From Dendrobates tinctorius (Eukaryota): a stretch of 64,000 nucleotides of DNA. The stretch spans positions 15,066,001 through 15,130,000 of the forward strand of contig NW_027361714.1 of the NCBI RefSeq assembly GCF_039654945.1, given 5' to 3'. How positions within the stretch are numbered: position 1 is the first letter of the stretch; the number at the start of each line of letters is the position of its first letter. The notes beneath the pieces are model-generated. The model had not been told where the DNA came from and did not search any database. It saw only the letters and a list, made by a program, of their open reading frames with translations. Positions 1,931 through 62,739 of the stretch are shown piece after piece. The translations under genes were made by a program, and so were the position numbers.

Positions 1931-4471
1931 TACCACCTAGGTTTATTAACCTTCTGGAATTTCATCATTTGGGCAGCGCGGACGAAATCCACGTATTCCT
2001 TTGCAGAGCTCTGTTTCAGATAGTCGGTGACCGACTTGTGGATCTGCAGCAGCCCTTATCTATACATGCTTTGAATACCTACTACCAGGTGAGCAATCTT
2101 TTGTCAAACCGCTTACTTTATTTGTGGGATAAGACCCTATATTGCGCTAGTCTCTCCCTCTTTCCTCACAATACTAGTCTCAAAGATCGTAGTAAGGTCC
2201 AGCGCACGTTCATCCTCTGCTGAGCGCTTGTACAGGGGTTTCCGTGTAAATTTCTGAAATATGTGATGCAGACGGGACCTCTGGCGGAAGGTTCCATGTA
2301 GGCAGATGGAGGCACTGTGGATGCGTCTGGCCTTTGATCCGTTTGTGTCCGTCGTCTTAGGATTTTATAAAAGTGCCGTCGGCCACAGTTTTGTGCGCTT
2401 GTGAAAAGGACAATGCTGAACAGAGGCCAGACGGAGTCCAGAGTAAATCTGCTTCCTCATTAGTGAGTGGATCCAACGGGGGTTTCATCTGAATCGTGTC
2501 ACTCGGAGATATAGATGGAAACCCCAAAGTAAGTGTTCAGCGTAGAGTGTCGGATAAATGTGATCCCAAACGTTACGTAAAATGTTCCCAATAAAAGCTT
2601 CAACTCAATCCACAAAGAAAACAAACCTGTCATCTGTTAACGAAAATATAGGAGGCTTCCAAGTTACTGGTAGTACAATGGCTCTGGAAAAGTAAAATGG
2701 CTCCTTGCCCCCCAAAAGAAATTCAGCAGGTTAGCACTTCCAAATCCAAATGCCCCCCCTCCCTTCTGAGCCCCACAGTGGGCCTATACCACATATAGGA
2801 ACCATACTTGACATTTCTGAAGTGATGAGAGCCCACCTAACTTACGGGTTGTGTCTCCAGAAGCATAAGCTGGGCATAACGTGCTGGTCACTATAGTCAG
2901 GGCTGTGGAGTCATTTTGGTGGAGTCGGTATAAAATGGTCCGACTCCTAAAATATATAATAAATTGGGTACAGTAGTTCAATGTAGAATGTGGTGAATAT
3001 TTTTCATAGGAATTTGGGATCTATTCCTGATCTAAGGCTACATTCACACACAGCGTTTTTGCTGCGTTTTTTGAGGATACGTTTTTTCAGCTGCAAAAGC
3101 AGATCAACTTTTTAAAAAAAAAGCATCACCTGAAAGGTTTTTGAGCTCATAGATAATGTTTTCAATAGCAAAAGCAGATTAGAAATCTGCTCTATCTATC
3201 CATCCATTTATCCATATCTGTCTATCCATATCTTATCTGTACCAAAAAGAATGAAAGCCGGGTAGCACACAGACTAACACTTTCTTTATCGCCTTATTGG
3301 GGGACACAGAATACCATGGGTGTATGCTGCTGCTGCTAGGAGGCTGACACTATGCAAAACAAGAAAATTAGCTCCTCCCCGGCAGTATACACCCACCGAC
3401 AGGCACTAGGCACCTCAGTTTGTGCTTAGTGTCTGTAGGAGGCGGACCGGGATCTTCCCAGATCCGCAATTAACCTTTCTTTCCTTTAGGTGTTCTTGTG
3501 GAACTTTTTAATTTTTTGTCTTTTGTTTTGCAGATTCAAGTCGGGAAACAGGGTGGAAGTTCACCCTGCTTTCCCATATCAGGCGGCTGAGCGAGCAGTG
3601 TGGCTGATCCCACATCGCACCTCTCAGTACGCTGGCAGGACCTTTTCCATATCACCTTCTGGTGCTATGGGATGTGGACAGGTGGCTGGTCCTTGCCAAA
3701 TCCCCCTCCTCACCCCTCTCTCGGGACAGGGCTGAGAGGAAGACGGCGATTGCAAGTTTTTCCTCGCCATCAAGAGGTTAATGCCGTCTTCTGCAGGGTC
3801 CGGGTACAGAGGACAGCGGCCAGCGGCTTACCACTACCCTTGTGAGAGTCCCCTGTGGTCATCCTCTTCAGGGACGTCAGGTAAGTGCCTGTACGATCCC
3901 TCCAGCCCGCAGCATTACCAAGTGGCACATCGGTGGAAAACTGAACAGCCGAACACATCAGGCTGTTTGAATCTCCCACCCCTCTCCCTGCCTGACGGGC
4001 GCCGCTCTCTAGCCGCGCGCCTCTCCACTTAGCTTAAGGGGCTGAATACAGGGTTTCTCTCCCCGTTTTCACAGCTGGGCAGTATTCTCTATTCTGCGCG
4101 CACACTTCTCCTTCCTGAGCGATTCCATCACGGGGCTGCGGGACTTCCACTTTCGCTTTCAGCTCCCGCTCTCAGTGCGCCTCCTCCTCTTTCTGAGCGC
4201 GCTGTCCTCACGCCTTTTTTAGCCCATCACAGGGCTCCTTTTTCTCTTCTGGTCTGTCAGCTCCAATTGCGGCTCAGCCGCTAAGCTCCGCCCACCGCTC
4301 ACCTCATCAGGCATTTCCTGTTTTTTCGGTCCTGCCTTTCTGCGCTGCCTGGGGGACACTTCAGCGTTCCTGCTGCTCGCCGGAACTAGGTAGGCTCTGT
4401 CTATGCAGAAATATTAGCCCTCCTCCGCAGTTCTTCCCCAATTCCCGCGGCCATTCAGCGCAGTTTTCCTT

Positions 4472-5950
4472 ATGCCCCAACCCTGCAGGGGAACTCTGTT
4501 TCAGGCCCACCGCTACTCATTACGCCTGTGCGCGCTGTAAAAAGAAGTGGGCTTCGGGTCAGCCATCGCCTTTCTGCCCATCCTGCAGTCCTTCAGCTAT
4601 GTCGGCCTCTCAGGAGCACACAGATTCCCGTGATGAGGGCACTTCTCCTCTCCCAGAATGAGCCGTAGCTATGTCTCAATCGGTCTCCGATCTGACCAAA
4701 GTCTCGCAGTCCCTGGTCCAGGTCCTAGAACGTTTACCTCAGCTATCTACAGCCACCGCTGCTCCGACCACCTCTCAAGGTGAGTCGTCCGCTCCTGACC
4801 GCGACCTTCAGAGGGACAGGCCGAGTAGGATGTCCAGGAAGCGTCTCCTATCGGGCTCGTCTTCCAGCTCGCTAGGCCCATCTGCTTCACCCAGATGTCC
4901 GTCTCCTTCAGTGGACGACCTTAGGTCAGATGATGATCCTCAATCAGGATCTAGTTCAGAAGCAGATGACATGTCTAAAACACGAAATATGGTCGATAGT
5001 CTTCTTTCAGCTATCTTCCAAACCCTGGAGATTAAGCAGGACAGGCCCCTTCCTCAGGAATGTTCTGTTCCATTTAAACGATCAAGGCCCCCACCCAAAA
5101 CTTTTCCAAACCACAACGAGTTTGATACTACTCTAGCCAAACATTGCGAGCACCCTGAGCAACGCTTTTCGGGCCGCAGGTATTTAGATGTTCTGTACCC
5201 ATTTGAGGCTGATTTGTTTTCTAAATGGACCAAAGCCCCTGAAGTGGACCCTCCCGTTTCTTGCATAGCCTCTAAGACGGTTCTGTCCCTTCCAGACGGT
5301 GCATCGCTTAAGGATCCAACAGACAGACAGAATCTTTGGCGAAGTCTATCTTTGAGGCCTCCGGCGCCTCCCTCTGCCCTATTTTCGCCTCCTCCTGGGT
5401 GGCTAAAGTCATTTCAGCTTGGGCTAAAATTCTTCGCAGGGGCATCTTAGCGGCGGCTCCCCAGGACGAGCTGGCAGATCTAGCAGATCAAATTAATCAT
5501 GCGGGTAAATACCTTTTAGCCGCCTCCTTGGATGCGGCCGGTTGCGTAGCAAGGGCTAACAGCAATATAGTGGCTGTACGCCGAGTTCTTTGGTTAAAGT
5601 CATGGAACGCGGATACCACCTCAAAAAAGTCGCTCACCAATCTGCCCTTCCATGGTTCTAGGCTCTTTGGGGCCAAGCTGGATCAAATAATTTCCGATGC
5701 CACTGGGGGTAAAAGTACTTCTCTCCCCCAGTCTCGACCAAGACGCCTTTTTAATAGAAAGGGTTTTCGGCCCTTTAGGCCTTTTCGTTCGTTCTCGTCC
5801 ACAGAGAGATCTGTCCAGCAAGAGCGTCCTTCCGCATCTAGGGAGCGAGAGCAGAAGAAACCTTCTTACAAGCCCGCTCCCCGCTGGAGATCTAGAGGAC
5901 AATACTCCAGATCTTCAGGTGCCCGTTCCGGTAGGTTTGCCTCCAAGTGA
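4472..5950 (+). pseudogene. DIRS A ORF1, Gag-like (N-terminal CxxC..CxxC; LAP2alpha-like C-terminal region)
   Basis: CARC...CPSC, then DPPVS..LKDP.DR and RR.LWLKSW.AD..SK..L..LPF.G..LFG..LD, homologous to ORF1 of copies B and C. Premature TGA near 4659, frameshift near 5330. Confidence 0.8.
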
Positions 5951-7851
5951 CGGGGCACCCCCACCTGGAAGTTTTTCCAGGGTGGGAGGCAGACTTTCCT
6001 TTTTCATGGACGCTTGGCTGTCGGTTGTCGACGACGCTTGGGTCAGGGAAATCATCGCATCCGGTTACAAGATCGAATTTTCGTCCCCTCCAGACAGGTG
6101 TTTTTTCCAGTCTCGACCTCCAAGACAACGGTCCCACATTCCAGGATTCTTTCAGGCCGTCTCCTCCCTTCTTTCCGCCGGAGTGATTGTTCCCGTTCCC
6201 TCAGACGAACGGTTTTCAGGGTTCTACTCAAATCTCTTCGTAGTCCCGAAGAAAGACGGCTCCCTGCGGCCAATCCTCGACCTCAAATTGCTCAATCGCC
6301 ACGTGAAGATTCTTCATTTCAAAATGGAGTCTCTTCGATCGGTGATAGCCTCAATGGAGCCCGGAGAATTTCTCTGTTCTGTGGACATACGGGATGCCTA
6401 TCTTCACATCCCTGTTTGCTTGCAGCATCAGAAATATCTCAGGTTTGCGATTCAGGAAAATCATTACCAGTTCACGGCTCTTCCCTTCGGCCTAGCCTCG
6501 GCCCCCCGTGTTTTCACAAAAGTGATGGCGACGGTCATGGCCATCCTTCGATCCAGAGGGATTCTCATCATCCCTTATCTGGACGATCTCTTAATCAAGG
6601 GCTCGACCCGTCAAGACTGTCTCCTAAGTCTTCAGATAACCCTGGATACTCTCGACCGTCTCGGATGGTTAGTCAACAAAGAAAAGTCCGTTCTCAGCCC
6701 CACTCAGCGTCTGAACTTTTTAGGCATGGAGTTCGACACGAACCTGGCCCGGGTGTTTTTTCCGAGGGAAAAATTTGCGGCTCTGGTCAAAGGGATTCGA
6801 GCCCTCAAACGGCCAACGCCCATTCCCCTTCGATTTTGCATGAAAGTTCTAGGGAAGATGGTGGCTTCCTTGGAAGCAGTGCCCTTTGCACAGTTTCACC
6901 TTCGTCCTCTTCAGCTGTCCCTCCTTTCAGTCTGGGACAAGACGACGAGGTCCTTGGACCGGCCCATTCTCCTCCCTCTCAAAGTAAGGCAATCCCTCAC
7001 TTGGTGGACGATGTCCTCATCAGTCCTCCAAGGGAGGTCCTTCCTCCCACTTCGGTGGCAAGTCATCACCACCGATGCCAGCCTCCTGGGTTGGGGAGCA
7101 GTTTTTCACCAGAGGACGGCTCAAGGACACTGGAACCCACAGGAAGCTCTTCTTCCTATCAATCTGCTCGAGATCAGAGCGATCTTTCTGGCCTTTCGCT
7201 GGCAACCCCTTCTCGTCGGCAAGCCGATCCGCATTCAGTCGGACAACGCCACGGCTGTGGCGTACATAAACCATCAGGGCGGCACGCGCAGCCACCAAGT
7301 CATGTCAGAGGTGGCCAGGATTCTGCGCTGGGCGGAACGTTACGTCCCAGCAATCTCCGCCGTTCACATTCCAGGGGTGGAAAACTGGGCTGCCGACTTT
7401 GAGTCCTCAAGGCCTAGCGTCAGGCGAATGGTCTCTCCATCCTTCAGTCTTCGATCAGATATGCAAGCGCTGGGGTTCTCCGGACGTCGACCTCATGGCA
7501 TCTCGGATGAACCACAAAGTTCCGCGCTTCGTAGCCAGGTCCAGGGACCCTCTAGCCGTCGCTTGCGACGCCCTAGTAATTCCGTGGTCCCAGTTCCAAC
7601 TCCCTTATCTTTTTCCACCTCTTGCCTTGATCCCAAGAGTGGTCAAAAAGATAAAATCGGAAGGCGTTCCAGTAATTCTTGTGGCTCCAGACTGGCCGAG
7701 ACGGCCTTGGTATGCAGAACTGGTGAACATGCTCGCGGATGTTCCCTGGAAACTTCCAGACCATCCGGATCTTCTCTCGCAAGGCCCACTTTGCCACGAG
7801 AATTCTCGGTCTCTGAATTTAACGGCTTGGCTGTTGAAGCCGCAATCCTAA
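5949..7851 (+). pseudogene. DIRS A ORF2: reverse transcriptase, RNase H and Dam-like methyltransferase
   Basis: RT motifs LRPILDL, DIRDAY, LPFGL and YLDD (6576-6587). RNase H TTDASLLGWG, INLLE, SDN. After a frameshift near 7399, MT motifs DLMAS and YLFPP. Confidence 0.9.
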
Positions 7852-8863
7852 AAGAATCAGGTTTTTCCAGCCAGGTGATTCAGACGATGATCAAAGCCAG
7901 GAAGCCAGCCTCTTCCCGCATTTACCACAGGTGTTGGAAGGCTTTTTTCCGTTGGTGCGACGATAAAAAAGTTTTTCCAATGGCTTTTTCCATTCCGTCC
8001 ATACTGGGTTTTCTCCAATCTGGCTTAGATTCGGGTCTGTCTCTCAGTACCCTGAAGGGCCAGGTTTCTGCCTTGTCTATCCTCTTTCAAAGAGAGCTCG
8101 CTTCCTTACCGCAGGTTAAGACGTTCCTCCAAGGAGTCGCTCATGTGGCTCCTCCTCATCATTCACCAATAGAACCGTGGGATCTCAATCTCGTTCTGGG
8201 CGCTCTCCAAAAGGCGCCGTTTGAGCCCATCCAGGACATTCCTTTGTCACTTCTGTCATGGAAGGTAACCTTTTTGATTGCCATTACATCCATCAGAAGA
8301 GTTTCTGAGTTAGCGGCCTTGTCATGCCGTTCTCCTTATCTGGTGCTCCATCAGGATAAAGTCGTCCTCAGGCCCGTTCCTTCCTTCCTGCCAAAAGTGG
8401 TTTCCTCCTTTCACATCAACGAGGATATCGTTCTTCCATCGTTTTGTCCGGCTCCTTCTCACCCTCTTGAGAAGTCACTCCACAAGCTGGATGTTGTTAG
8501 AGCCTTGCGTGTCTACCTCGCTAGGACCGCTTCACTTCGTCAATCCGATTCATTGCTGGTCACAGGAAAGGGCTTCCGGCATCCAAATCCACGATCGTTC
8601 GCTGGATTCGTTCTACCATTCAGGAAGCATACCGACTTCAGGAAAAATGGCGCCCTCCGGGAGTGAGAGCTCACTCCACCCGGGCTGTGGCAGCTTCGTG
8701 GGCCGTTCGACACCAGGCTTCGGCTCTGCATCTTTGCAGGGCCGCGACCTGGTCGTCCTTGCACACATTTGCGAGGTTCTACAGGGTTCATACCCAGGCC
8801 TCGTCTGATGCAGTTGTTGGTAGGAAGGTTCTGCAGGCGGCGGTGGCGCACCGGCCGACCTAA
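5951..8863 (+). pseudogene. DIRS A ORF3: tyrosine recombinase with a long N-terminal extension overlapping ORF2
   Basis: Open frame 5951-7402 overlaps RT. It continues as the C-terminal part of the 989-aa ORF (SIRRVSEL) and, after a small deletion near 8562, as HSTR...W....TF.RFY (YR catalytic R, HxxR, W, Y). Confidence 0.88.
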
Positions 8864-8923
8864 GCCTTTCCTGTTCTTTCGTTCCTTATTGCTGTTCCCG
8901 CCCTTGGGACTGCTTTGGAACGT

Positions 8924-9022
8924 CCCATGGTATTCTGTGTCCCGCAATAAGGCGATAAAGAAAGATGGATTTTTGGTTCTTACCGTAAAATCTCTTTCTT
9001 GGAGCCTTCATTGGGGGACACA
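8924..9022 (+). repeat. Internal complementary region (ICR) of DIRS A
   Basis: Reverse complement of the left terminus (...GGCGATAAAGAAA) joined to the reverse complement of the right terminus (ATGGATTTTTGGTTCTTACCG...). Confidence 0.92.
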
Positions 9023-9502
9023 GCACCCTCCCTGTCTAATTTGTACCGTGTTGGGTCTTTGAGTCCCTTGTTGGGTTGGTACATATGTTTAGAGTGTTCC
9101 GTTGCTTCTCCTACTGCTTTCTCACCAACTGAGGTGCCTAGTGCCTGTTGGTGGGTGTATACTGCCGGGGAGGAGCTAATTTTCTTGTTTTGCATAGTGT
9201 CAGCCTCCTAGCAGCAGCAGCATACACCCATGGTATTGTGTCCCCCAATGAAGGCTCCAAGAAAGAGATTTTACGGTAAGAACCAAAAATCCATTTTTTT
9301 TTTTTTTTTTTATAAAGCACCAGTCAGGTACACCCCTTCAATTGATAGTTGGAATAAATAAACTGCATTCACCACATCTTAAGGTGCAGGCTTTATTTTC
9401 ACGTGTAGGGGTGTGCAATATAAGGTTCTGCAGCAGCTGCGGTGCTTAGTTACCTGCTGTTTACCTTGGATACCAGCTCCCAGCGTCTGCTTACAGGACC
9501 TG

Positions 9503-10264: not shown

Positions 10265-13200
10265 TTTTGTTTTCACAGCTCAACGTTATAAACTTCTGTA
10301 AAGCACCTCAGGCTTCAAGGTGCTCACCACACACCTAAATTCATTCCTTGATGGGTCTAGTCTTCCATATGGGGTCTCTTGTGGGGGATTTCTATTGTTT
10401 AGGCACATCAGGGGCTCTCCAAACAGGGACATGACATCCGCTAATGATTCCAGGAAGTTTTATATTCATAAAGTCAAATGTTGCTCCTTCCCTTCCGAGC
10501 CCTGTCGTGCTCCCAAACAGTAGTTTCTCCTACGCCTCATTGGGGGACACAGACATTGGTTGTTATGCTGCTTGCCAGTAGGAGGACACTAAGTGAATGT
10601 AGAAAAAAAGTAACTCCTCCCCTGCAGTATACACCCTGTCGCTGGCTGGGAATTCCCCAGTTCATACTTAGTGTCTGTAGGAGGCACTTGGGTCTGGCTT
10701 CAGACCCCACCGTTTTTATTTTCATTTTTGAATTTTCTGTAAATTTTTACTTTTTAATTAACGGAGTGAAGGGGGCGACGGTTCCTTTCAACGGCACGCT
10801 CTCTCCCGAACCAACAACAGGCGAGCACGTGGAGTATATCTCCCCGTACACTTTCCCGCGACGACTGGGGCATACCTGATTCTTCTGGGCGATGGTTCCT
10901 TTACGGTCCTGGTCTCACTGCACGGATATGAGGGCAAGCGCACAGAGCACACAGCGTACAGGAAGAAGACTTTGGAAGCGCTTTCGGATGCCATGAATCA
11001 CCCCCATGGCCTCTCCATCCCCCTGCCTCTTGGACAGCGCAGTCGGCGCGAGCACCGGATTGGAGGTATGGGGTCGGGTCCTGGTCCCTGGGAGAAGCGC
11101 TGACTTAGTCTCAGCAGCGCTATACCGGCGCTCCGGCGCGGCCCTCCGCTCCCCCCACCGCTCACCGCGGGTAGGCCCAAAAATTTAGTCCCAAAAATTT
11201 AGTCCCCAGCTTTTTGGCCTACTAGGCCGCAATTTACATAGCGCCGCCACCCACGTCTTTGGCGCTTCTCGCTCTGTACGAGAGGCGCCCTGCTAGTCTC
11301 GGGGGCCATGTCCTTAACCCCTTCTCTGCACCTTGCCTGCAGCTGCAGCCCAGGCTCTGCTTGTAACCCTTTCAGGGGCACTATGTCTCAATCTAAAGAG
11401 ACAAAATGGGGGCTACTAAGAAGCACACTGCGTTCTTTACTGCTTGTACCACCTGCAACACTGCCTTGCCCAGTGCTCAGACTAATCCGCTATGCACGGA
11501 TTGCGACCTGGCTTGTGCTAAAACGCCAGCCGCCGCCGCTGCAAGGTGCTCCTTGCGTTTAGTCCATCTAAGTGGGCTGCCTCCTTGTCACGGTCTGTGG
11601 AGTCACTGACCAAGGCTATAGACTCCCTCCGGGAATCCTCTTTAAGTCAGAACGCGTCTTTATCGCCCGAGGAGGGCTTTGGCGACGGCCAGGAACCGTC
11701 TACCAGCAGGGGCTGTGCTCGTTCAAGGGATCCTCAGGTCTCTAGAAAGCGGACCCATGACGTGTCCCCTAATCACGCTCGCGCGTCAGCATCGGCGAGT
11801 TCTGTCTCTCGCTCTCCCTCTCCTAATGTTCGCAGAGGAACATGACTCTGAATTCGCGTCTGACATGTCAGTCCCTCAGAATTCCCCAAATGTCCATGAG
11901 TCGCTTGGTTCTCTTACAGAGTCAGTCAACAAGTTTCTGACGTTGGACGAGGAAAATATTCTCGCTCCGGAACACGTTATCTCCTTTAAGGAGTCAAGAC
12001 GCGTACGCAGGGTATTTGCCAGCCATCCGGAGTTTAAGGACAGAGCAATAGGAACCGACCACATAAACGGTTCACAGGGTAAAAGCCTATCGAGGCTAAA
12101 TACCCCTTTACTCCAGATCTAATGAAGGATTGGTTACAGTCCCCCTCGGTGGATCCTCCTGTATCGTGTTTTGCTTCTAAAACGCTTTGATCCGTTTTTG
12201 AGGGCTCTTCAGTCAGAAACCCCTCCGATCGTCAAATTGGCTACCTCGCGCGTTCAGTTTTTGGAGCTTCAGGAGCGGCACTATTCCCATCTTTCGCTGT
12301 GACTTGAGTAGCTAAGGAAATGGCCACTTGGGCAGAAGTCTTAGTTACTGCCTTCCAATGTAGCAATCTTCCTCCGAAGACAACCAGTGTCGCCAAGAAA
12401 ATTCACGCAGGGGACTTTTGTAGTGGACGCCTCTTTAGATGCCGCTAATTGCGCTGCTCAGGCAGCCGCTAATGCAGTCTCCATTAGAAGATCCCTATGG
12501 CTACGCAACTGGCGGGCAGATTCCACCTCCAAGAGATCAATGACTTCTCTTCCCTATCAAACTGGTTGCCTATTTGGAGAAAAACTAGACCAGCTCATTT
12601 CTGACACTTCAGGGGGAAAGAGTAAGTTTCTTCCCCAACAAAGGGCTGTCTGGCCGTCTTTTTCAGAATCAACAGCCGACTCTTTTTTTCGACCTTTTCG
12701 CAACAGCTCCAGCTGGTCCTCCACAACCTTCTCTTCTGGATCAGTTCGGTCCATGCGTGGAGACAGAGGTTCCCAGGTCTCTTACAGACCTAACCGATCT
12801 TGGAAACCAAGGCCAAGAGCAGCTGGATCTAGTGGAGCCGATCCCATAGATCCTCTACTCAATGACTTGTGGTATCCGGTAGACTCCGACAAAGTAGGCG
12901 GCCGTTTGCTGTCATTCAGTCACAGCCTTCCTTCGGGCCGCTCATGCGCCGCAAAGGGACAGAGTCATCCTTCCGGTCTCTCAAGACGAATGGTTCAGCG
13001 GTTTTTATTCAAACCTTTTTGTGGATCTAAAGAAGGAAGGAATGATGCGGCCCATACTGGACATCAAGCTGTTAAATCAGTTTGTCAAGGTACGGCGATT
13101 CCGAATGGAATTTCTCCGATCGGTTGTCTCCTCCATGTAAAAAAGAGAGTCCTTAGCATCCGTCGGTGTCAAGGATGCTTACCTTCACATCCCGATTTGC

Positions 13201-14848
13201 CCGTCTCACAAGCAGTTCCCGTGTTTTGCAATTCGAGAGGAACACTTCCAGTTTGTTGCCTTTGCTCTTTGGACTTGCCACCGCCCCCAGGGTCTTTACC
13301 AAGGTTATGGCGACAGTAATGGCCATTCTTCACGCTCGGGGACTGGTGGTATTGCTGTATCTGGACGACCTGCTGATCAAGGTTTCGTCCCTTCCAGCCT
13401 GCAAGGGATCCGTGGAAATCACAGTGCATACACTTTCTTACACTTCGGAAAGTCTTCCCCCAACACCGTTCCAGCAGATTTCCTTTTTGGAAATGATCTT
13501 TGACACTTCCCGCGGGTTGGTCATTCTCCCTCCAGAAAAGGCCCGAGCCTTACAACAGGCAGCGCGGACTCTTTCCCGAACGGTTTCAGACTCACGTTTC
13601 AGCATGATAGTTCTCGGAAGGATGGTGGCAGCGATGGGAGCGGTCCCATTTGCACAGTTCCTTCTGTCCCTGCGAGTCAGACAAACCCTCAAGTGGTGGA
13701 CACTGAAACCCTCCCTGAATCAAGGGAAGTCCTTTCTCCCAGTACGATAGTCGGTGGTGACCACCGACGCCAGTCTTCTGGTCTGGTGTGCGTTTTTTTT
13801 TTCATCACCACACGGCACAGGGTCGTTGGTTAATTCGAGAGTCACGTCTCCCGATCAACATCTTGGATATTCGAGCGATCAGATTAACCCTACTGAGTTT
13901 CCACAATCTCTCCTCGCAGGTCACCTCATCAGGATCCAATCCGACAACGCCACGGCTGTGGCGTAGATCAACCGTCAGGGGGGTACTCGGAGCAGGATGG
14001 CCATGCACGAAGTGAGTCACATCCTCCATTGGGCCGAGACCAACCATTCACCCATCTCAGTAATCCACACCAGGGGTGTAGACAATTGGGCGGTGGATTT
14101 TCTCTGTTGCCAAGGCCTTGCCACAGGAGAGTGGTCTCTTCATCCGGAAGTTTTTTCAGCAGATTTGCCATTGCCGGGCGACTCCGGATGTGGATCTTAT
14201 GGCCTCAAGACTAATCAACATGGTTCCTCGATTCATTGCCCGACCGCGTGGTCCATGCACCATCGGAGCGGACGCCCTAGTTCTGCCGTGGCACCGCTTC
14301 CATCTCCCGTGCATTTTTCCCCTCTTCCTTTGCTCTGATTTTCTTGATGAACCTCGGGAGCAAGGGAAGTACCAGTGAACCTAGTCGTGCCATATTGGTC
14401 GCACCGGCCATGGTACGCAGAACTAGTCGCCAACGTTCTCTGGTGACTTCCAGATCGCATGGATCTACTCACAGGGCCCGATTTACCACCAGAACTCCGG
14501 TGGCCCTGTCTTTGTTTGCGTGGCCGTTGAATCCTGGTTGTTAGCACAGGCTAAATTTTTTTTTTTCTAGCGACGGGATCTCCACTATGCTAGGAAGCTC
14601 GTGTCCATACGCATTTATCACCGCACCTGGAAAACCACCTTCTCGTGGTGCAAGGACTATGGTTGATCCCCTCTGGTGTTTTCCATATTGGAATTCCTGC
14701 AATCCGGATTAAGGTCAGGCCTCGCGCTTAGCTCACTCAAAGGCCAGATTTTCAGCCTTGTTGGTTCTATTCCAACGCAAATTGCCACCAACCTACAGTT
14801 GTAGCCGTTCATTCAGGGAGTTTCCCATGTGGCGCCTCCCTATATAAA

Positions 14849-15108
14849 TAATAATGATCTTTATTTTTATATAGCGCTAACATATTCCGCAGCGCTTTAC
14901 AGTTTGCACACATCATCATCACTGTCCCCGACGGGGCTCACAATCTCTAAATTCCCTGTCTGTATATCTTTGGAATGTGGGAGGAAACCCACGCAAACAC
15001 AAAGAGAACATACAAACTCCTTGCAGATGTTGTCCTTGGTGGGATTCGAACCCAGGACTCCCAGCGCTGCAAGGCTGCAGTGCTAACCACTGAGCCACCG
15101 TGCTGCCC
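14849..15108 (-). mobile_element. tRNA-derived V-SINE
   Basis: Minus strand has A box TGGCTCAGTGG, B box GGTTCGAATCC, V-domain-like GGAGTTTGTATGTTCTC...GCGTGGGTTTCCTCC and an ATT-repeat tail. TSD (CCC)TATATAAA at 14838-14848 and 15106-15116. Confidence 0.85.
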
Positions 15109-17693
15109 TATATAAAGGGCCATTGGAATCATGGGACCTTAACTTGGCTCTCGGAGCCTTACAGGAGGCTCCTTTCGAACCACTGCAGGATGTACCACTA
15201 GCTATTCTCTCTTCGAAGGTGTGTTTTTTTTTTTTGTGGCAATTACATCAAACAGCTGAGATTCGGAATTGGCGACCCTATCCTGCCGTCCTCCGTTCCT
15301 AAATTTTCATCAGGACAAGGCAGTTCTCAGGACGTCCCCGTCTTTCCTGCACAAGGTTGTCTTCCTTTCATCTCAATGAGGAAATTGTTTTGCCTTCCTT
15401 TTGTCCGGCACCAGTCCATTGCATTGAGAGGGCCCCCCACACCCTGGAATGTGGTTAGGGCTCTGAGACGGTGCATCTCGCGGACGGGCCCCTTCCACAA
15501 GTCATATGCCCTGTTCGTACTTCCACAAGGGCATAGGAAGGGTCTAGTCGCTTCAAAAGCCACGCTAGCCAGGTCGATTCGCTTAGCTATTCAGGAAACC
15601 TATCGTGTCAGGGACACACCTGTCCCAGCAGGGATTAACCCCTTCACTACCAAGGGTGGTTTGCACGTTAACTCCCGGGCCAATTTTTACAATTCTGACC
15701 ACTTTCTCTTTATGAGGTCATAACTCTGGAACGCTTCCATGGATCCCGGTGATTCTGACACTGTTTTCTCATGACATATTGTACTTCATGTTAGTGGTAA
15801 AATTGCATTCAAATAACTTGCGTTTATTTGTGAAAAAAGCGGAAATTTGGCGAAAATCACAATTTTCCAAATTTGAATTTTTATGCCCTTAAATCACAGT
15901 GATACGGCTCACAAAAAACTTAATAAATAACATTTCCCACATGTTTACTTTTACATCAGCACAATTTTGGAACCAAAATTTTTTTTTTTGTTAGGAAGTT
16001 ATAAGGGTTAAAAATTGACCAGCGATTTTCTCATTTTTGCAGTACCATTTTATTTTTAGGGACCACATCACATTTGAAACCACTTTGAGGGGTCTGTATG
16101 ATAGAAAATACCCAAAAGTGACACCATTCTAAAAACTGCACCCCTTAAGGTGCTTAAAACCACATTCAAGAAGTTTATTAACCCTTTAGGTGCGTCACAG
16201 GAATTTTTTGAATATTTAAAAAAAAAAATGAACATTTAACTTTTTTTCACAAAAAAAATACTTCAGGTTCAATTTTCTTTATTTTGCCAAGGGTAGAAAT
16301 TGGGCTGCAAAAGTTATTATGCAATTTGTCCTGAGTACGCTGATACCTGATATGTGGGAGGGAACCACTGTTTCGGCGCATGGCAGACCTCAGTAGGGAA
16401 GGAGCGCCGTTTGACTTTTTCAATGCAAAATTGGCTGGAATTCAGATCGGACGCCATGTCGCATTTGGAGAGCCACTGATGTAACTAAACAGTGGAAACC
16501 CCCCCAAGTGACCCCATTTTGGAAACTAGACCCCCCAAGGAACTTATCTAGATATGTGGTGAGAACTTTGAACCCACAAGGGCTTCACAGAAGTTTATAA
16601 CGTACAGCGGTACAATTAAAAAATCATATTTTTTCCACAAAAACGATCTTTTCACCCTCAATTCTTATTTTTCCAAGAGTAACAGGACCCTAAAAGATAT
16701 TGTGCAATTTATCCTAAGTGCGCTGATACCCCACATGTGGGGGTAAACCACTATTTGGGCGCATGGCAGAGCTCGGAAGGGAAGCAGCACCATTTGACGT
16801 TTTTGGCTGGAATTGAGATCGGACACCATGTCGCGTTTGGAAAGCCCCTGATGTGCCAAAACAGTAGAACCCCCCCACAAATGACACCATTTTGGTAACT
16901 AGACCCCCCAAGGAACTTATCTAGATGTGTGGTGAGCACTTTGAGCCCCCCAGTGCTTCACAGAAGTTTATAACGCCCGGGCGTGAAAATAAAAAAATCG
17001 TATTTTTTTCCACAAACATCTTTTAGTCCCCATTTTTTTTATTTTCCCAAGGGTAACAGGAGAAATTGGACCCCAAAAGTTGTTGTCCAATTTGTCCTGA
17101 GTACGCTGATACCTCATATGTGGGAGAAAACTACTGTATGGGCACACGTCGGGGCTCGGAAGGGAAGTAGTGACATTTTGGAATGCAGACTTTGATGGAT
17201 TGGTCTGCGGGTGTCATGTGCGTTTGGAGAGCCCCTGATGTACCCAAACTATTGAAACTCCCCACAAGTGACCCCATTTTGGAAACTAGACCCCCCCCCC
17301 ACGGAACTTATCTAGATGTGTGGTGAGCACTTTGAACCCCCAAGTGCTTCACAGAAGTTTATAACGCCTGGGCGTGAAAATAAAAAAATATTTTTTTTCC
17401 GCAAAAATGATATTTTTGCCCCCAATTTTTTATTTTCCTAAGGGTAACAGGAGAAATTGGACCCCAAAAGTTGTTTTGTAATTTGTCCTGAGTAGGCTGA
17501 TACCCCATATGTGGGGGTAAAACACTGTTTTGGCGCATGGCAGAGCTTGGAAGGGAAGGATCGCCATTTGACTTTTTCAACGCAGAATTGGCTGGAATTG
17601 AGATCAGACGCCATGTTGCCTTTGGAGAGCACCTGATGTGCCCAAACAGTGGAAACCCCCCAATTATAACTCCAACCCTAGCCCTAACCCTAA

Positions 17694-18058: not shown

Positions 18059-21000
18059 TGACCCTAGCCCTAACCCTAATGGGAAAATGGAAATAAATAC
18101 ATTTTCTTTTAGTTTTATTATTTTTCCCTAACTAAGGGGGTGATAACGGGGGGTTTGATTTACTATTTATGGCGGGTTTTTAAGTTTGGCAGCTGTCAGA
18201 TGCTAAAAGACGCTTTTTATTGTAAAAATAGTTTTTGCATCACCACATATTGTGAGCTATAATTTTTCCGTATTTTGACCCACCGAGTCATGTGAGGTCT
18301 TATTTTTTTGCTGGACGAGTTGACGTTTTCATTGGTACCATTTTGGGGCACGTGACATTTTTTGATCGCTTTTTATTCCGATTTTTGGGACGCAGAATGA
18401 ACAAAAACCAGCGTTTCATGAATTTCTTTTGGGGGGTGCGTTTACACCGTTCCTCGTGCGGTAAAATTGATAAAGCGTTTTTATTCTTCGGGTCAGTACG
18501 GTTACAGCAATACCTCATTTAGGTCTTTTTTTATGTTTTGTCGGTTTTTTGCAATGAAAACAATTTTATATAAATTATTTTTGTATCGCTTTATTCTGCG
18601 AGCTATAAGTTTTTTTATTTTTTTGCGGATGACGCTGTATGGCGGCTCTTTTTTTGCAAGACAAGATGACGTTTTCAGCGGTACCATGGATATTTATATG
18701 CCTCTTTTTGATCGCGCGTTATTGCACTTTTTGTTCGGTGGTATGATAATAAATCATTATTTCTCGTTTGCCTTATTGGGGGACACAGAGACCATGGGTG
18801 TATGCTTTGCTGCCACTAGGAGGCTGACACTATGCACAAAAAAAAGTTAGCTCCTCCTCCACAGTATACACCCCACCGACCGGCACCAATTTCCTCAGTT
18901 TAGCTTAGTGTCAGTAGGAGGTGGACACGGGTCTTTCATTAGACCCATATCTACCTCGTCGTGCGTCGTTCCTTTACAGGTTCTACGGAGGGATACAGAG
19001 TGAACAGTCACATCTGTACTCCCACATGGAGTCTGCGAGTACGGCGTGTACTGCCACCCCGTATCCTTGCAGTTCTCCGCGGCAGGACCAGCCAGACGGA
19101 CGCCGACACCAAGACGTGCCAGCGACTCCAGGGGTCCTTGTCGCCAGTCTCCCTCCCACTCGCCTACCAGAGCCTGTCGGTTGGATGATACGCAGGACTT
19201 CTTCAAACCCAGGTAACGGATCGGGGATGGGTGAGTATAAATTTTTTTTTTTTTTTAATTTTTATTACCTGGCCGCTCATTCCCGGCGGACAGGGGGCCT
19301 CTTCAATGGCACAGGGATGCGGGCGCTGCGGTCGCTCGCAGTCGCCCTACATCTATAGGCACACCATGCTCTTTGCTGGCCCCGCATTCCCCCCTTCTCC
19401 TCCCCCTTTCTGGGGACAGGGAGCACAGGGCCTTTTTCCTTTCCTCCCCTTGAGAGCGGCTTGCGGCTGCGGCGTCCCCTTCTTCCGACCTCCGCGCCGA
19501 CCCCCTGCAGACAGGCGGCCGCCGCAACTAATTTAGGCCCCGGCTTCAGTTCGGGCCTGCCGCTGCGTCGCGGCCACGCCCCTTTCTTCTAAGCGGGCTT
19601 CTCTCCCGCTCTTCCCAGGCCCTCCAGGCGGTGGCCTGTCCTTCACCTGCCCAGCCTGCTATTGGCTAGAGGCCGGTGAATTTTAACCCTGCGATGTGCT
19701 CCGCCCTCCCTCCTCTCCTGGACGCGCGCTCTTTCTCAGGCAGGCGCCATTTTACCAGCCTGTTAGCCGGACACCAGCTCGTTCCCGGATCATCTTCTGC
19801 CAGCTCTTTTTTTCCGTTCAGGAGGTCTATCTGCCGGATTTCGCTCTGACCTGCATCCACTGACAGGTCGCAGAGCATCGCTTCTGGGGACACCGGACCG
19901 TGAGTAGCTCTGCACTGCAGACTGACCCTTCTCCGCCCTCTGTCCCCCAACCTTCCGGCATTACCTCAGCTTTTCACTATGTCTACCTCTAAGTCTGATC
20001 GTACCCGCTTTACTGCCCCCCCCCCTGCACTTTAGTCAAGTTCTTTGCATGTTCTTCGTGCAATCGCAAACTTCCCTCAGGCCAGTCCACTCCCCTCTGC
20101 CTGGATTGTAGCAACCCAATTCAGCCTGACGCTGTCCAGGAGCCATCTACGGCTCCAGGTGAGAGTGAACCCCCCATGCCTGGCTGGGCCTCCTCGCTAT
20201 CTCAATCAGTGGCAGACCTCACCAAGGTGTCTCAGTCCCTGGTGGCCGTTCTTGATAAGTTACCCCTGGACTCTTCAGCAGGGCCAAGCAGGTCCCAAAT
20301 TGTTCCATCTGAGTCAGCCAGCGTTAGACGCAAAAGACCCAGGCAAGATGCCCAGCCGGATTCCTCTCCTAGTCCCATCTCACCGCGTAGCCCTTCTCAG
20401 CAGCCTCCCTCTCGGGCCTCCTCTCCCGAGTCAGGTGAAGCGCTTTCGGACAGGTCATCTGAGGGGATTTTAGAGCTGGATTCAGACCAGGATGCAAACA
20501 TGAAGGTCACAGTGCAGCGATCCATCATACTTTCGATATTGCTGACTCCCCTGCGAAATCCTCAGATCAGGAGGTTTCGTTCAGACGGGCAGAAACTCCC
20601 TCCAGGGTTTTTCCTTTCCATTCCGAGTTTGGGAAGATTTTTACCAAGGAAAGAGAGGATCCGACCAGACGCTTTCAAAGAGGAAAACGTCTAGGCGTAC
20701 TCTACCCATTTGCTAAGGAGCTCACAGACAACTGGTCGGCCTCTCCCTCGGTGGATCCGCCCGTGTCCAGGCTTTCCAATAACACGGTTCTTGCGCTTTC
20801 AGGCGTGGCGTCCCTAAAGGATTCTAATGACAGGATTATAGAATCCCTGGCGAAGTCTGCCTTTGAAGCGGCTTCAGCGGCTGTGTGCCCAATCTTTGCT
20901 TCATCCTGGGTAGCAAAGGCCATAGCCACATGGGCAGACGACCTTCGTCAAGGCGTCTTGGATAAGGCGCAACCGGAGCGTTTGGCCGATCTCGCCAATC

Positions 21001-22102
21001 AGATCTCCCATGCTGGGGACTATCTTCTTTCCGCTTCCTTGGATGCCGCATCCTGTGCAGTTCAGGCGTCAAGCAACGTAGTTGCAATTCGACGTACAGT
21101 TTGGCTGAAGGCCTGGCAAGCGGACTTGTCTTCTAAAAAGTCCCTCACTAACCTGGCTTTTCAGGGGGTGCGCCTCTTTGGGTCCCAATTGGACCAGATT
21201 ATTAAGGACGCCACCGGAGGCACGAGTTCACTCCTCCCTCAGTCCAATCCTCGCAGACCTCCTCTAAGGCGTCAGTTTCGACCCTTTCGGACTTTCCGCC
21301 GTTTCAATACGGCGGACAACTCCAGCCAACAGAGACCGCAGGCTCGCCAGGAGAGAGAGAAAGTTTCCTTCAGACCCACTCCTTCCTGGCGATCCCACTC
21401 TTCCCAGGGCAGACCGTCCAGATCTGGACGGTCTACTTCAGCATGACTATCGTTGGACACGCGAGGGGCCTTTCCAATTGGGAGGCCGACTTCCTTCCTT
21501 CAGGGACGTTTGGCTGGCCTCCGTAGAGGACGCTTGGGTCAGGGAGGTCGTATCCTCAGGATACAAGATACAGTTCGTCTCTCTCCCACGGGATCGTTTC
21601 TTCTAATCCCGGCCTCCAAAGGATCCAGCCTTGATCCCGAGGTTCTCTACGGCTATCGCCTCTCTCCTCAGACAGCACCACTACCAGTTCGTCTCACTGC
21701 CCTTCGGTCTTGCCACCGCTCCCAGACTCTTCACGAAGATCGTGGCTGCGTTGGTGGCTTTGTTGAGAGTCAGAGGTCTCGTTCTTTTCCCGTACCTAGA
21801 CGATATTCTGATCAGGGCTCCCTCATTTCAGCAGGCTCACCAAAGTTTGTCAATCGTCCTGGACACTCTTTCCGATTTCGGGTGGATCGTCAACATGAAA
21901 AAGTCCTGTCTGGTTCCTACCCAACGCCTGGTCTTTCTAGGCCTTCTGTTTGACACTCGTCGGTCAAGGGTCTTTCTCCCACAAGAGAAGATTCTCTCTC
22001 TGCAGCAGGAAGTACGATCGCTGCAGATCTCACGATTCCCGTCCCTCCGTGCAGCCAGGAGGGTCCCGGGAAAGATGGTGGCGGCGATAGAGGCAGTTCC
22101 CT

Positions 22103-23974
22103 TTGCCCAATTTCACGGCAGACCTCTCCAGCAGGATTCTTCCTTCCCATTCGCTGGCAGATAGTAACCACAGATGCCAGTCTCCTCGGTTGGGGCGCAG
22201 TGTTCCGCAACCACACTGTTCAGGGTCGATGGTCGGATCGGGAATCAGTACCGATCAACATTCTGGAGATTCGAGCTATCCATCTTGCTCTCGTTCACTG
22301 GGAAAGCCTCCTCAAGGGACTGCCGGTACGGATTCAGACAGACATCGCCACAGCGGTGGCATTTGTCTACCGCCAAGGGGGAACACGGAGTGTCTCAGCC
22401 CTGGCGGAGGGGTCAAAGATTCTTCGTTGGGCGGAGATTTCCGTTCCGACAATTTCCGCGGTGCACATTCCCGGTGTAGACAACTGGGCCGACGATTTTC
22501 TCAGCCGCAAGGGTCTCGCGGCAGGAGAGTGGTCCCTCCATCCGGAGGTGTTTCATCTGCTCTGCCTTCGGTGGGGAACCCCGGATGTAGACCTCATGGC
22601 GTCTCGCCTCAACAGGAAAGTCCCACAATTCGTGTCCAGGTCTCGGGACCCTCTGGCAGTGGGCGCCGACGCCCTGGCCGTTCCTTGGTCCCAGTTCAAC
22701 CTTCCCTACCTGTTCCCTCCTCTGCCTCTTCTTCCCAACCTGTTGAAAAAGATCAAGGCAGAAGGAATTCCAGTCATTCTCATCGCCCCGAATTGGCCCA
22801 GAAGGTCTTGGTTTGTGGACATTGTCAACCTTCTCGCGGACGCCCCCTGGAAGCTTCCAGAGAGAACAGATCTGCTGTCTCAGGGACCGATTTGCCACCC
22901 CAATTCTCGGCCGCTCAATTTAATGGCGTGGCTGTTGAGACCGAGGTTCTGAAACGGGCAGGATTTTCCGACCAGGTAGTTCAGACCATGATCCGAGCCA
23001 GAAAGCCATCATCTTCCAAGATCTACTACCGTACTTGGAAGGCCTATTTCACTTGGTGTGAGACCAATGACATCGCGCCCATGTCCTTTTCGCTCCCTTC
23101 AGTCCTAGCGTTTCTTCAGGCGGGATTGGATGCGGGCCTTGCCCTCAGTTCCCTGAAGGGTCAAGTTTCGGCGCTGTCCATTCTATTTCAGAAAACATTG
23201 GCTTCCCGTCCTCAGGTTAAGACCTTTCTTCAGGGCGTGGCCCACACGGTTCCGCCGTACCGGACGCCCGTGGATCCATGGGATCTTAATCTGGTTCTTG
23301 AGGTTCTGCAAGGTCCTCCCTTTGAACCCCTCAGGGATAATTCCCTTTCTCTCCTTTCTTGGAAGGTAGCCTTTCTGGTGGCCATCACCTCCGTCCGGCG
23401 CGTGTCGGAATTGGCAGCTCTTTCGTGCCGCTCCCCTTTTCTGGTGCTCCACCAGGATAAGGTAGTTCTGCGGCCTCTGCCCTCTTTCCTGCCGAAGGTG
23501 GTGTCCTCGTTTCACCTCAACGAGGATATCGTGCTACCATCCTTTTGTCCGTATCCAACTCATCCCCGAGAGCGGTCCTTGAACAAGCTGGACCTGGTTA
23601 GGGCGATAAGAGTCTATCTGTCTAGGACGACTTCCTTGCGAAAGACAGAGCTTTTCATTATCCCTGATGGGGCGCGGAAAGGTCACTCTGCGTCAAAGGC
23701 CACTATTGCTCGCTGGATCAGATCGGCAATTTTGGAAGCCTACAGAGTTAAGCGTCGCGGAGCCCCTCCGGGGATCAGGGCCCACTCTACTCGGGCAGTG
23801 GGTGCCTCCTGGGCGGTGCGCCACAGAGCTTCCGCGCTGCAGCTTTGCAAAGCTGCAACATGGTCATCGGTTCACACGTTTGTGAAATTCTACAGAGTCC
23901 ACACCTACGCTTCGGCGGACGCCAGCCTAGGTAGACGGATACTGCAGGCCGCGGTGTTGAGTCCGCTGGCCTGA
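22103..23974 (+). CDS. DIRS C tyrosine recombinase, open 623-codon C-terminal part
   Basis: SVRRVSEL, HSTR and WSS.HTF.KFY all in one uninterrupted frame; the listed start is not a true ATG. Confidence 0.85.
   Translation: MPNFTADLSSRILPSHSLADSNHRCQSPRLGRSVPQPHCSGSMVGSGISTDQHSGDSSYPSCSRSLGKPPQGTAGTDSDRHRHSGGICLPPRGNTECLSPGGGVKDSSLGGDFRSDNFRGAHSRCRQLGRRFSQPQGSRGRRVVPPSGGVSSALPSVGNPGCRPHGVSPQQESPTIRVQVSGPSGSGRRRPGRSLVPVQPSLPVPSSASSSQPVEKDQGRRNSSHSHRPELAQKVLVCGHCQPSRGRPLEASRENRSAVSGTDLPPQFSAAQFNGVAVETEVLKRAGFSDQVVQTMIRARKPSSSKIYYRTWKAYFTWCETNDIAPMSFSLPSVLAFLQAGLDAGLALSSLKGQVSALSILFQKTLASRPQVKTFLQGVAHTVPPYRTPVDPWDLNLVLEVLQGPPFEPLRDNSLSLLSWKVAFLVAITSVRRVSELAALSCRSPFLVLHQDKVVLRPLPSFLPKVVSSFHLNEDIVLPSFCPYPTHPRERSLNKLDLVRAIRVYLSRTTSLRKTELFIIPDGARKGHSASKATIARWIRSAILEAYRVKRRGAPPGIRAHSTRAVGASWAVRHRASALQLCKAATWSSVHTFVKFYRVHTYASADASLGRRILQAAVLSPLA
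22200..22952 (+). pseudogene. DIRS C RNase H C-terminal half plus Dam-like methyltransferase domain
   Basis: INILE, HIPGVDNWAD, then GEWSL, DLMAS, DAL..PW and YLFPP. Overlaps the YR frame; disconnected from RT by a frameshifting deletion near 22138. Confidence 0.82.
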
Positions 23975-62244: not shown

Positions 62245-62674
62245 CTGTGCATGCCTACCTAGATGCGGCTAACTGTTTCGCATTTGCAGCTGCTAACGTT
62301 GTTAGCATCAGGAGAGCCCCTAGGGCTCTGGGAGTGGAGAGCAAACCCCTCTAACAGGAAATCTCTAATTTCCCCACACAGGGATAGGGAATCTCAAACT
62401 GGCATTCAAGCCCTCATTCCTGGAGACACAAGCCCTCTCTGTGCAGATCCAAGGGTCCTCCTTCCCGCATGTTTTCTGCGCTTTGACTCCGGTATCCGGA
62501 AGACACAGGCAGGCTCTTCTTTCGACAGGTCCCACTGGCAATCGTTCAAGACCAAGGGGTCAGAGATCTGGTGTCCCCCAGACGCAAAAATAGAATTTGC
62601 GTCTTCCCTGGCAACACTCTTCTTCCAGACCCTTCTTCGGAGGATAGAAGTGCGTGCAGTTCCATTTTATCAAG

Positions 62675-62739
62675 GACGAAGTGGCTGAGCGGTTAAGGCG
62701 ATGGACTGCTAATCAATTGTGCTATGTACGCTTGGGTTC
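62675..62739 (+). pseudogene. 3'-truncated tRNA-Ser(GCT) copy inside the DIRS D RT gene
   Basis: GACGAAGTGGCTGAGCGGTTAAGGCGATGGACTGCTAATCAATTGTGCTATGTACGCTTGGGTTC. About 7 mismatches to the vertebrate tRNA-Ser(GCT) as I recall it; anticodon at 62708-62710; ends in the T-loop. Confidence 0.85.

Follow-up and report, generated by a model that had tools for sequence, protein, structure and literature searches.

An in-frame gag stop codon, usually UGA, precedes an open frame leading to the tyrosine recombinase in a frog-type DIRS retrotransposon and distant relatives: possible stop-codon readthrough

Organization of the element

A degenerate DIRS1-like element, termed copy A, lies at about positions 3280–9300 on the forward strand of a 64,000-nucleotide stretch of Dendrobates tinctorius DNA (contig NW_027361714.1, positions 15,066,001–15,130,000 of assembly GCF_039654945.1), here called the window. 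The left inverted terminal repeat is at 3280–3424, and the right inverted terminal repeat together with the internal complementary region is at 8924–9302. In a self-BLAST comparison the left repeat gives 96–98% inverted matches to 8924–8964 and 9123–9255, and 8957–9022 is inverted against 9237–9302.

The gag N-terminal part (4671–5450, frame in which position mod 3 = 0) was identified by its open reading frame and by tblastn to gag of two further copies in the window, B and C. The frame changes before the C-terminal part (5336–5947, mod 3 = 2), which is LAP2alpha-like (Pfam PF11560, E 2.2e-8) and is 60% identical to gag of copy C. The C-terminal open reading frame, 5336–5950, ends with TGA at 5948–5950, and the next codon is CGG (5948–5953 together). 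The homologous stops are TGA-CTT at 12863 in copy B, TGA-CTA at 21444 in copy C and TGA-CTC at 62484 in copy D.

The pol open reading frame (5697–7400, mod 3 = 0) is +1 relative to gag and is open 257 nt upstream of the gag stop. Pfam matches to RVT_1 (2e-21) and RT_RNaseH (1.4e-4) place reverse transcriptase (RT) and RNase H of the Ty3/gypsy-related type in this region (within 5697–8663), and the best protein hits are frog DIRS-type open reading frames with 59–65% identity. An MT-like domain without a Pfam name follows at 7399–7851 (mod 3 = 1); its segment 7399–7848 is 71% identical to that of copy C and is conserved in the alignment of relatives. By tblastn, RT is in frame 3 and MT in frame 1, whereas in intact relatives the two share one frame; copy A is therefore frameshifted near 7400.

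The gag frame, read past the TGA, forms a stretch of 483 stop-free codons (5951–7402) laid over RT/RNaseH and ending with TGA at 7400–7402. This stretch, termed the bridge or X, is rich in S, R, P and G, has no Pfam hit, and has its first ATG only at codon 238 (position 6665). The bridge continues at 7403–8666 in another frame (mod 3 = 0), as a junk-like stretch that leads into the tyrosine recombinase (YR) domain at 7812–8561. This frame has 0 stops, against 9 and 21 in the other two. A second break within the YR puts its C-terminal part, 8558–8845, in yet another frame (tblastn with residues 253–348 of the copy C YR, frame 2). The putative YR is assigned by alignment alone: 7812–8845 aligns at 72% to the 623-amino-acid YR open reading frame of copy C and to the YR regions of about 80 loci, with no Pfam integrase hit at E below 0.01.

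The original prediction described the TGA, the CGG codon, the long open frame lacking an ATG for over 200 codons and a downstream hairpin, and these observations are confirmed. The frame does not itself reach the YR in copy A, however, and that 5951–7402 represents the YR N-terminal extension is shown only by homology with intact relatives. Copy A has frame breaks in gag, near 7400 and near 8560, and could give only a truncated product, not Gag-YR. A programmed frameshift inside gag was considered, as gag is split between two frames in copies A and C and in a related locus, L090, but the breaks lie at different places and represent independent decay.

A single in-frame stop in related elements

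A series of 80 metagenomic loci (L numbers) plus assemblies was compared. In 40 clusters of intact-looking relatives (below 80% nucleotide identity to one another; RT 32–65% identical), gag and the YR share one frame, and this frame has one stop at the gag end followed by 960–1010 open codons. In L005, gag and TGA are followed by 970 open codons through the YR, while the third frame has about 60 stops. L087, L088 and L089 have a single TGA in the whole frame. The class I elements lie on one side of a branch with 100% support and show deep internal divergence.

The gag stop is TGA in 35 clusters, TAG in four and TAA in one. By contrast, TGA is found at 6/26 YR stops (23%; Fisher 2e-7) and 8/37 pol stops (22%; Fisher 4e-9), although the families share ancestry and the counts are not independent. 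UGA is the leakiest stop codon. The TGA also fixes an Asp or Glu codon in the overlapping pol frame, which could contribute to the bias. Selenocysteine decoding of the UGA was judged unlikely across such diverse hosts.

The base after TGA is C in 20 of 35 clusters (p 5e-5 to 1e-3), G in seven, A in five and T in three. CTA, in five clusters, is the commonest next codon, and CGG is found in one. The UGA-CGG or UGA-CUA context cited in the original prediction is thus present in copies A and C but in only 6/35 clusters.

The open frame is maintained by selection

The open frame in copy A is not due to chance. Of 85 pol codon junctions that could create a stop in the bridge, none does; synonymous shuffles expect 15.8 stops (minimum 5 in 2000), and the third frame has 17. 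Across the relatives the frame of roughly 650 codons laid over RT/RNaseH/MT never has a stop, where shuffles expect 14–40 per element. Of 4855 pol codon junctions that could make a stop in X, none has the required T, against 24% T elsewhere. Elements without the long overlap show no such avoidance, and their gag is not in the YR frame. An origin of the open frame in base composition is rejected by these results.

The bridge is low in complexity and evolves fast, with 27–47% amino acid identity where pol shows 55–80%, as expected of a bridge rather than a domain. Pol four-fold sites are only slightly more conserved than in the YR or gag, so X is not a conserved domain. There is no conserved ATG in X, and 15 families have none in the first 200 codons, but about half (23 of 44) have an ATG within 50 codons of the stop.

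The downstream hairpin

A compact hairpin (5960–5970, loop GUUU, 5975–5986) begins 9 nt after the copy A stop. It consists of 11 bp plus one bulged G, with −16.1 kcal/mol on its own, which places it in the most stable 0.1% of 27-nt segments of the window. About 0.3% of random sites have such a hairpin starting 4–14 nt downstream. In its 56–60 nt context, however, the fold is not unusual: the z-score is −0.8 to −1.1 against dinucleotide shuffles, and recodings of the overlapping pol frame fold almost as well (−18.6 against −22.1 kcal/mol, rank 0.21).

The same CCCAC/GUGGG stem lies 7–9 nt after UGA in L002, L087, L088, L089 and L090, and the hairpin is confined to these five and copy A, six related families. 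A covariance model returned only the six seeds and weak hits in L041 and L044. Stem covariation, which had been named beforehand as a test, was not above shuffles in the six-family alignment, where the core does not vary. Copy C has a weaker hairpin 20 nt downstream of its stop (junction at 21444–21504), after which the same frame is open. Across the clade, structure after the stop is only marginally enriched (z −0.94 against −0.36 with dinucleotide shuffles and −0.63 against −0.26 with synonymous recodings; p 0.01–0.06).

It might be argued that nothing at this junction is functional, the hairpin being a by-product of Pro (CCN) and Gly (GGN) codons of pol and the open frame one of base composition. 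The hairpin arms do lie on P-P-P and V-G-G codons. This reading is very unlikely, as the open frame cannot be compositional. In addition, the hairpin keeps its 7–9 nt spacing although the distance from stop to motif differs (25 or 34 nt) and the upper stem sequences differ. Fisher's method applied to the recoding ranks of the six families, calculated by hand, gives about 0.003, but these families are related and not independent.

Possible routes to the recombinase

The explanation favored here, with a probability of roughly 0.55, is that in intact relatives most ribosomes terminate at the gag stop and make Gag, while a small fraction read through it, translate the bridge and make a Gag-X-YR polyprotein. 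This would be how a 3′-distal open reading frame without its own start codon is translated from the full-length RNA. In the copy A lineage, the UGA-C context and the GC-rich hairpin may raise the readthrough rate. The anatomy, its conservation, the selection for an open frame and the stop codon bias are established by the analysis, whereas readthrough itself, the role of the hairpin and any packaging of the YR with the particle, as proposed in the original prediction, are inferred from sequence alone. The interpretation offered in that prediction is therefore partly supported: the frame after the gag stop is the YR frame and the evidence supports readthrough as the route to the YR in this clade, but UGA-CGG/CUA plus a hairpin is not a conserved signal. 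One locus, L012, has no stop at all between gag and X.

Several lineages do not fit this scheme. L058, L069/L062, L045 and L054 keep an X-YR frame of 958–1112 codons, opening within 7–340 nt of the gag stop, although gag is in another frame. In Pinctada, X is 620 nt and many stops away from gag, and in Rhineura gag ends in three stops and X opens 600 nt into pol. L022 has two TGAs, and L002–L004 have a TAG, followed by an ATG, just before the YR. Ribosomes must therefore be able to reach X or the YR in other ways.

These exceptions, and the families with an early ATG, are in keeping with independent translation of X-YR by reinitiation after gag termination, a non-AUG or AUG start or leaky scanning, or with a separate RNA for the YR; the single in-frame stop would then be only a consequence of the frame layout. 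This is considered unlikely. It does not predict the UGA bias or the C bias, and the frame is open from the stop in the 15 families that have no ATG for more than 200 codons. Reinitiation after an open reading frame of about 450 codons is normally very inefficient in eukaryotes. No well-supported gag-to-YR splice joint was seen among short Logan contigs of this highly repeated family, but the contigs, of uncertain library type, were too short to judge and gave no usable view of the junction.

Alternatively, the UGA and hairpin may mainly represent a stop-stimulated +1 frameshift site for Gag-Pol, with readthrough a side product or absent. Pol is gag+1 in all class I families and its frame is open a median of about 300 nt upstream of the stop, a region without ATG in 14 of 44 families. 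TGA followed by C gives GAC in the pol frame, and the codon before the stop is TCC in five clusters. There is no conserved shifty codon, however, with 15 different codons before the stop, and a pol frame open 300 nt upstream suggests that entry into pol happens earlier. This doubtful alternative does not explain why X is kept open for 650 codons, but it is compatible with readthrough rather than exclusive of it.

A Pol-YR fusion by −1 frameshifting near the end of pol, with some other cause for the long open frame, appears more doubtful still. The YR frame is RT−1 in nearly all of about 85 loci, including those without a long overlap, where the YR open reading frame overlaps only the last 240 nt or so of pol. 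This leaves unexplained the complete absence of stops in X from the gag stop onwards in 40 clusters.

A broader hypothesis is not excluded, although it is somewhat less likely than not. A whole deep clade of DIRS1-like elements, from frogs to unidentified aquatic eukaryotes, would make its recombinase only as a Gag-bridge-YR readthrough polyprotein, and the roughly 2-kb second frame across pol would exist solely as a translational bridge. The gag stop would be a three-way decision point, to terminate, shift +1 into pol or read through to the YR, with sister lineages reaching the same bridge by frameshifting.

Significance and comparison with known systems

How DIRS elements express three overlapping open reading frames from one RNA has, as far as could be found, never been worked out. 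No mention of readthrough or of an in-frame gag stop in DIRS elements was found in the literature searched, although earlier notice cannot be excluded. The arrangement gives a concrete, testable mechanism that would explain one of the longest known dual-coding stretches in eukaryotic mobile elements, add a new use of readthrough in retroelements, the delivery of a recombinase rather than pol, and provide a rule for annotating the YR open reading frame. DIRS elements are abundant in amphibian, fish and invertebrate genomes; in Dictyostelium they form the centromeres, and a retrotransposition assay exists there.

A long overlap between pol and YR has been reported, as a curiosity, in half of 28 DIRS1-like elements, including those of Anolis, Xenopus, Tetraodon and fungi (Piednoel et al., 2011, PMC3266345). 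This is the same element type and the same overlap. In the text searched, no mechanism is given, nor is it mentioned that gag is in frame with the YR open reading frame, with a single, UGA-biased stop; these are the additions made here.

In alphavirus and tobravirus type II readthrough, UGA-CGG or UGA-CUA is followed by a 3′ stem-loop. Copy A has UGA-CGG with a hairpin 9 nt downstream and copy C has UGA-CUA, but 15/35 clusters do not have C after the stop, and the hairpin is specific to one lineage and unproven. In stop-codon-stimulated +1 frameshifting, as in antizyme (UCC-UGA-U) and bacterial prfB (CUU-UGA-C), an in-frame UGA is found with the +1 frame open across it and a 3′ structure. Here such a shift would serve pol, not the YR.

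In gammaretroviruses, as in MuLV, a gag stop (UAG) with a pseudoknot about 8 nt downstream is read through at low frequency to make a Gag fusion. In the present clade the stop is usually UGA, pol is in another frame, and the predicted product would be Gag-bridge-YR rather than Gag-Pol, with the readthrough frame laid over the whole pol gene for about 2 kb.

Anatomy of copy A

A DIRS1-like retrotransposon, copy A, is found at positions 3280-9300. It displays inverted terminal repeats (3280-3424 against 8924-9255), an internal complementary region, a gag with a LAP2alpha-like domain, RT/RNase H (RH) domains detected by Pfam, an MT-like domain and a tyrosine recombinase (YR). Over 8992-9300, which covers the right terminal repeat and the internal complementary region, the depth of aligned contigs rises 10- to 50-fold compared with the coding part; the termini are therefore far more abundant in the genome than full elements.

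The gag C-terminal open reading frame ends at TGA 5948-5950 and is followed by CGG. The same frame then stays open for 483 codons, to TGA 7400-7402, with its first ATG at codon 238. Over that span pol (RT/RH) is read in the +1 frame, and the third frame has 17 stops. The translated sequence of the open frame, here termed the bridge, is rich in S, R, P and G and has no Pfam hit, as expected of a frame laid over another gene. The hairpin of the original prediction does exist, at 5960-5986. It has 11 bp plus one bulge and a GUUU loop, folds at -16.1 kcal/mol and is within the most stable 0.1% of 27-nt windows of the 64-kb sequence. The features described in the original prediction are thus present in the sequence.

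Copy A is, however, broken. The gag N- and C-terminal parts (4671-5450 and 5336-5950) are in different frames, RT/RH (frame 0) and the MT-like domain (frame 1) are in different frames that change near 7400, and the YR is split between two frames near 8560. A minority of contigs from the same organism differ by a small indel at the place near 7400. In copy A the frame after the gag stop therefore ends at 7402 and does not itself reach the YR. The relation becomes clear from copy C (20176-24417, 65-70% identical), where the 623-codon YR open reading frame has a long N-terminal extension over RH/MT in the pol-1 frame, and gag (stop 21444, TGA-CTA) is in that same frame once copy C's own frame break is allowed for. 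In copy A, upstream of the break near 7400, pol-1 is exactly the gag frame. The original identification of 5951-7402 as the YR extension is therefore right by homology.

Besides copy C, two further DIRS copies lie in the same 64 kb, copy B (12387-15700) and copy D (62484-63989). The three are of different families (about 64-70% nt identity to copy A where the DNA aligns; copy D only 34% in pol protein) and all are decayed. Copy C lacks about 93 codons of the RT N-terminus, copy B has several frame changes, and copy D, in which a putative tRNA-Ser insertion was reported with the original prediction, runs off the end of the sequence.

Intact relatives

A protein search places the pol nearest to dendrobatid frog sequences, at 59-65% identity. 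In one intact relative (locus L005), gag is followed by TGA and then by 970 open codons through the YR, with about 60 stops in the third frame. Three other relatives (L087, L088 and L089) have a single TGA in the whole frame. A frog-type family seen in three sequencing runs (L002-L004) has TGA, 670 open codons and then a TAG (L002:3919, L003:3902, L004:3919) 18 nt before an ATG at the start of the called YR open reading frame. The bridge may therefore also be made without the YR in this family.

A scan of metagenome contigs with a pol alignment gave 80 more loci, with pol 32-41% identical to copy A. Scripted annotation shows that the YR is in the pol-1 frame almost everywhere. Formation of a Pol-YR fusion by a -1 shift is a rival reading, but it is considered improbable. 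About 50 loci, forming 40 clusters below 80% nt identity, have one stop at the gag end, which in most lies 40-150 nt before the conserved start of pol. After that stop the frame has no stop for 960-1010 codons, to the end of the YR, whereas the other alternative frame carries 40-99 stops. On a quick pol tree these elements, termed class I, occupy one side of a branch with 100% support, with deep internal divergence.

Selection for the open frame

A stop in the bridge frame needs a pol codon ending in T, followed by a pol codon starting AA, AG or GA. In 37 class I elements there are 4855 junctions at risk, and none is preceded by T, although T is 24% at other junctions; synonymous shuffles expect 14-40 stops per element and never gave fewer than 4. 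In copy A none of 85 such junctions is preceded by T, where 15.8 stops are expected. By contrast, in 8 elements without the long overlap about 30% of the junctions are preceded by T, and the 42-56 stops expected from shuffles are about what these elements show. In the elements without the long overlap, gag lies in the pol+1 frame and is thus not in the YR frame.

The bridge protein evolves fast, with 27-47% identity where pol is 55-80%, and pol four-fold sites are only slightly more conserved than in the YR or gag. The constraint is therefore to stay open and not to keep a sequence.

The gag stop and its context

Among the 40 clusters, the gag stop is TGA in 35, TAG in 4 and TAA in 1. YR stops are TGA in 6, TAG in 9 and TAA in 11, and pol stops are TGA in 8, TAG in 24 and TAA in 5. 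The gag bias to TGA gives a Fisher p of 2e-7 against YR stops and 4e-9 against pol stops, but the families share ancestry, and TGA also fixes an Asp or Glu codon in the overlapping pol frame. After TGA the next base is C in 20, G in 7, A in 5 and T in 3 clusters. CTA is the commonest next codon (5), and CGG occurs once, in copy A. All four copies in the 64-kb sequence have UGA-C, with next codons CGG, CUU, CUA and CUC.

There is no conserved ATG in the bridge. The first ATG ranges from codon 7 to codon 620, and 15 families have none in the first 200 codons. One contig (L012) has no stop at all between gag and the bridge, and its gag-bridge-YR frame is open from the contig start to the YR stop (up to about 6320); its sister on the tree is an element from Pinctada.

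The pol frame is open a median of about 300 nt (range 41-461) upstream of the gag stop in class I families (5697-5950 in copy A, and the same region in L002, L005, L008 and other loci), and 14 of 44 families have no ATG there. This suggests that Gag-Pol is made by a +1 frameshift within the overlap. Several families, including copy A at 5697, do have a pol-frame ATG about 242-254 nt before the stop. It is possible, though doubtful, that the UGA and hairpin serve mainly as a stop-stimulated +1 shift into pol; such a role would be compatible with readthrough of the same stop.

The downstream hairpin

Six related families (copy A, L002, L087, L088, L089 and L090) have a CCCAC/GUGGG stem that starts 7-9 nt after the UGA. 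The distance from the stop to the conserved pol motif V-G-G-R-L is 34 nt in three of them and 25 nt in the other three, and the upper stems differ in sequence but still pair. On the other hand, the core pairs never vary, only one pair changes on both sides, and shuffles match that count as often. The arms lie on Pro and Gly codons of pol, synonymous recoding of pol gives folds nearly as stable for copy A (rank 0.21), and a covariance model found no further clear members. Across all families, the 60 nt after the stop are slightly more structured than internal controls, with z-scores of -0.94 against -0.36 with dinucleotide shuffles and -0.63 against -0.26 with recoding (p 0.01-0.06). Copy C and its relative L001b have only weaker hairpins, starting about 17-20 nt downstream. 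In another class I lineage, with UGA-CUA (L023:647-719 against L052:2339-2411), a longer stem-loop ends on the G-G-R-L codons, and by eye two of its base pairs differ between the two families by changes on both sides, synonymous in the 3′ arm. The CCCAC/GUGGG hairpin is a plausible lineage-specific stimulator, but it is not an established one. That the junction has no function at all is regarded as very unlikely.

Exceptions to the common layout

A third layout is found in four lineages (L058:275-4789; L069:558-4587, with L062; L045:617-5486; L054:3-4056), which have gag in the pol+1 frame yet keep a bridge-YR frame of 958-1112 codons that opens 7-340 nt before the gag stop. Both this frame and pol open within a few to about 340 nt of the gag stop, although in L054 the pol frame opens about 100 nt after it. 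Pol would need a -1 shift from gag, and the bridge-YR frame a +1 shift or a fresh start.

In a Pinctada copy, the fully open bridge is separated from gag by 620 nt with many stops. In a Rhineura copy, gag ends in TAG, TAA, TAA and the bridge opens 600 nt into pol. A Leuresthes copy and a Xenopus copy have stops in the bridge and look partly decayed, and L022 (another of the loci) has two TGAs one codon apart. These cases show that ribosomes can reach the bridge or the YR in other ways, and independent initiation or reinitiation near the gag end is the leading rival explanation, albeit a tentative one. In every long-overlap lineage except Rhineura and Pinctada, however, the bridge begins at the gag end, which fits a general picture in which the YR is reached from gag by recoding.

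Proposed mechanism and comparison with known systems

It is proposed, with a probability of about 0.55, that in class I elements low-level readthrough of the gag UGA gives a Gag-bridge-YR product. The frame layout, the absence of stops in the bridge and the bias of the gag stop are read directly from the sequences compared, whereas translation through the stop, and any stimulation of it by the hairpin, are inferred from sequence alone. The original interpretation, that a UGA-CGG context with a 3′ hairpin forms a readthrough signal linking Gag to the YR, is thus supported in part.

A description of an in-frame, UGA-biased gag stop, or of readthrough in DIRS elements, was not found in the literature examined, the coverage of which was incomplete. 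What appears to be new is the single, UGA-biased gag stop in frame with the bridge and the YR. The long pol/YR overlap itself has been reported (Piednoel, 2011). Readthrough of a gag stop occurs in gammaretroviruses, and UGA-C signals are found in alphaviruses.
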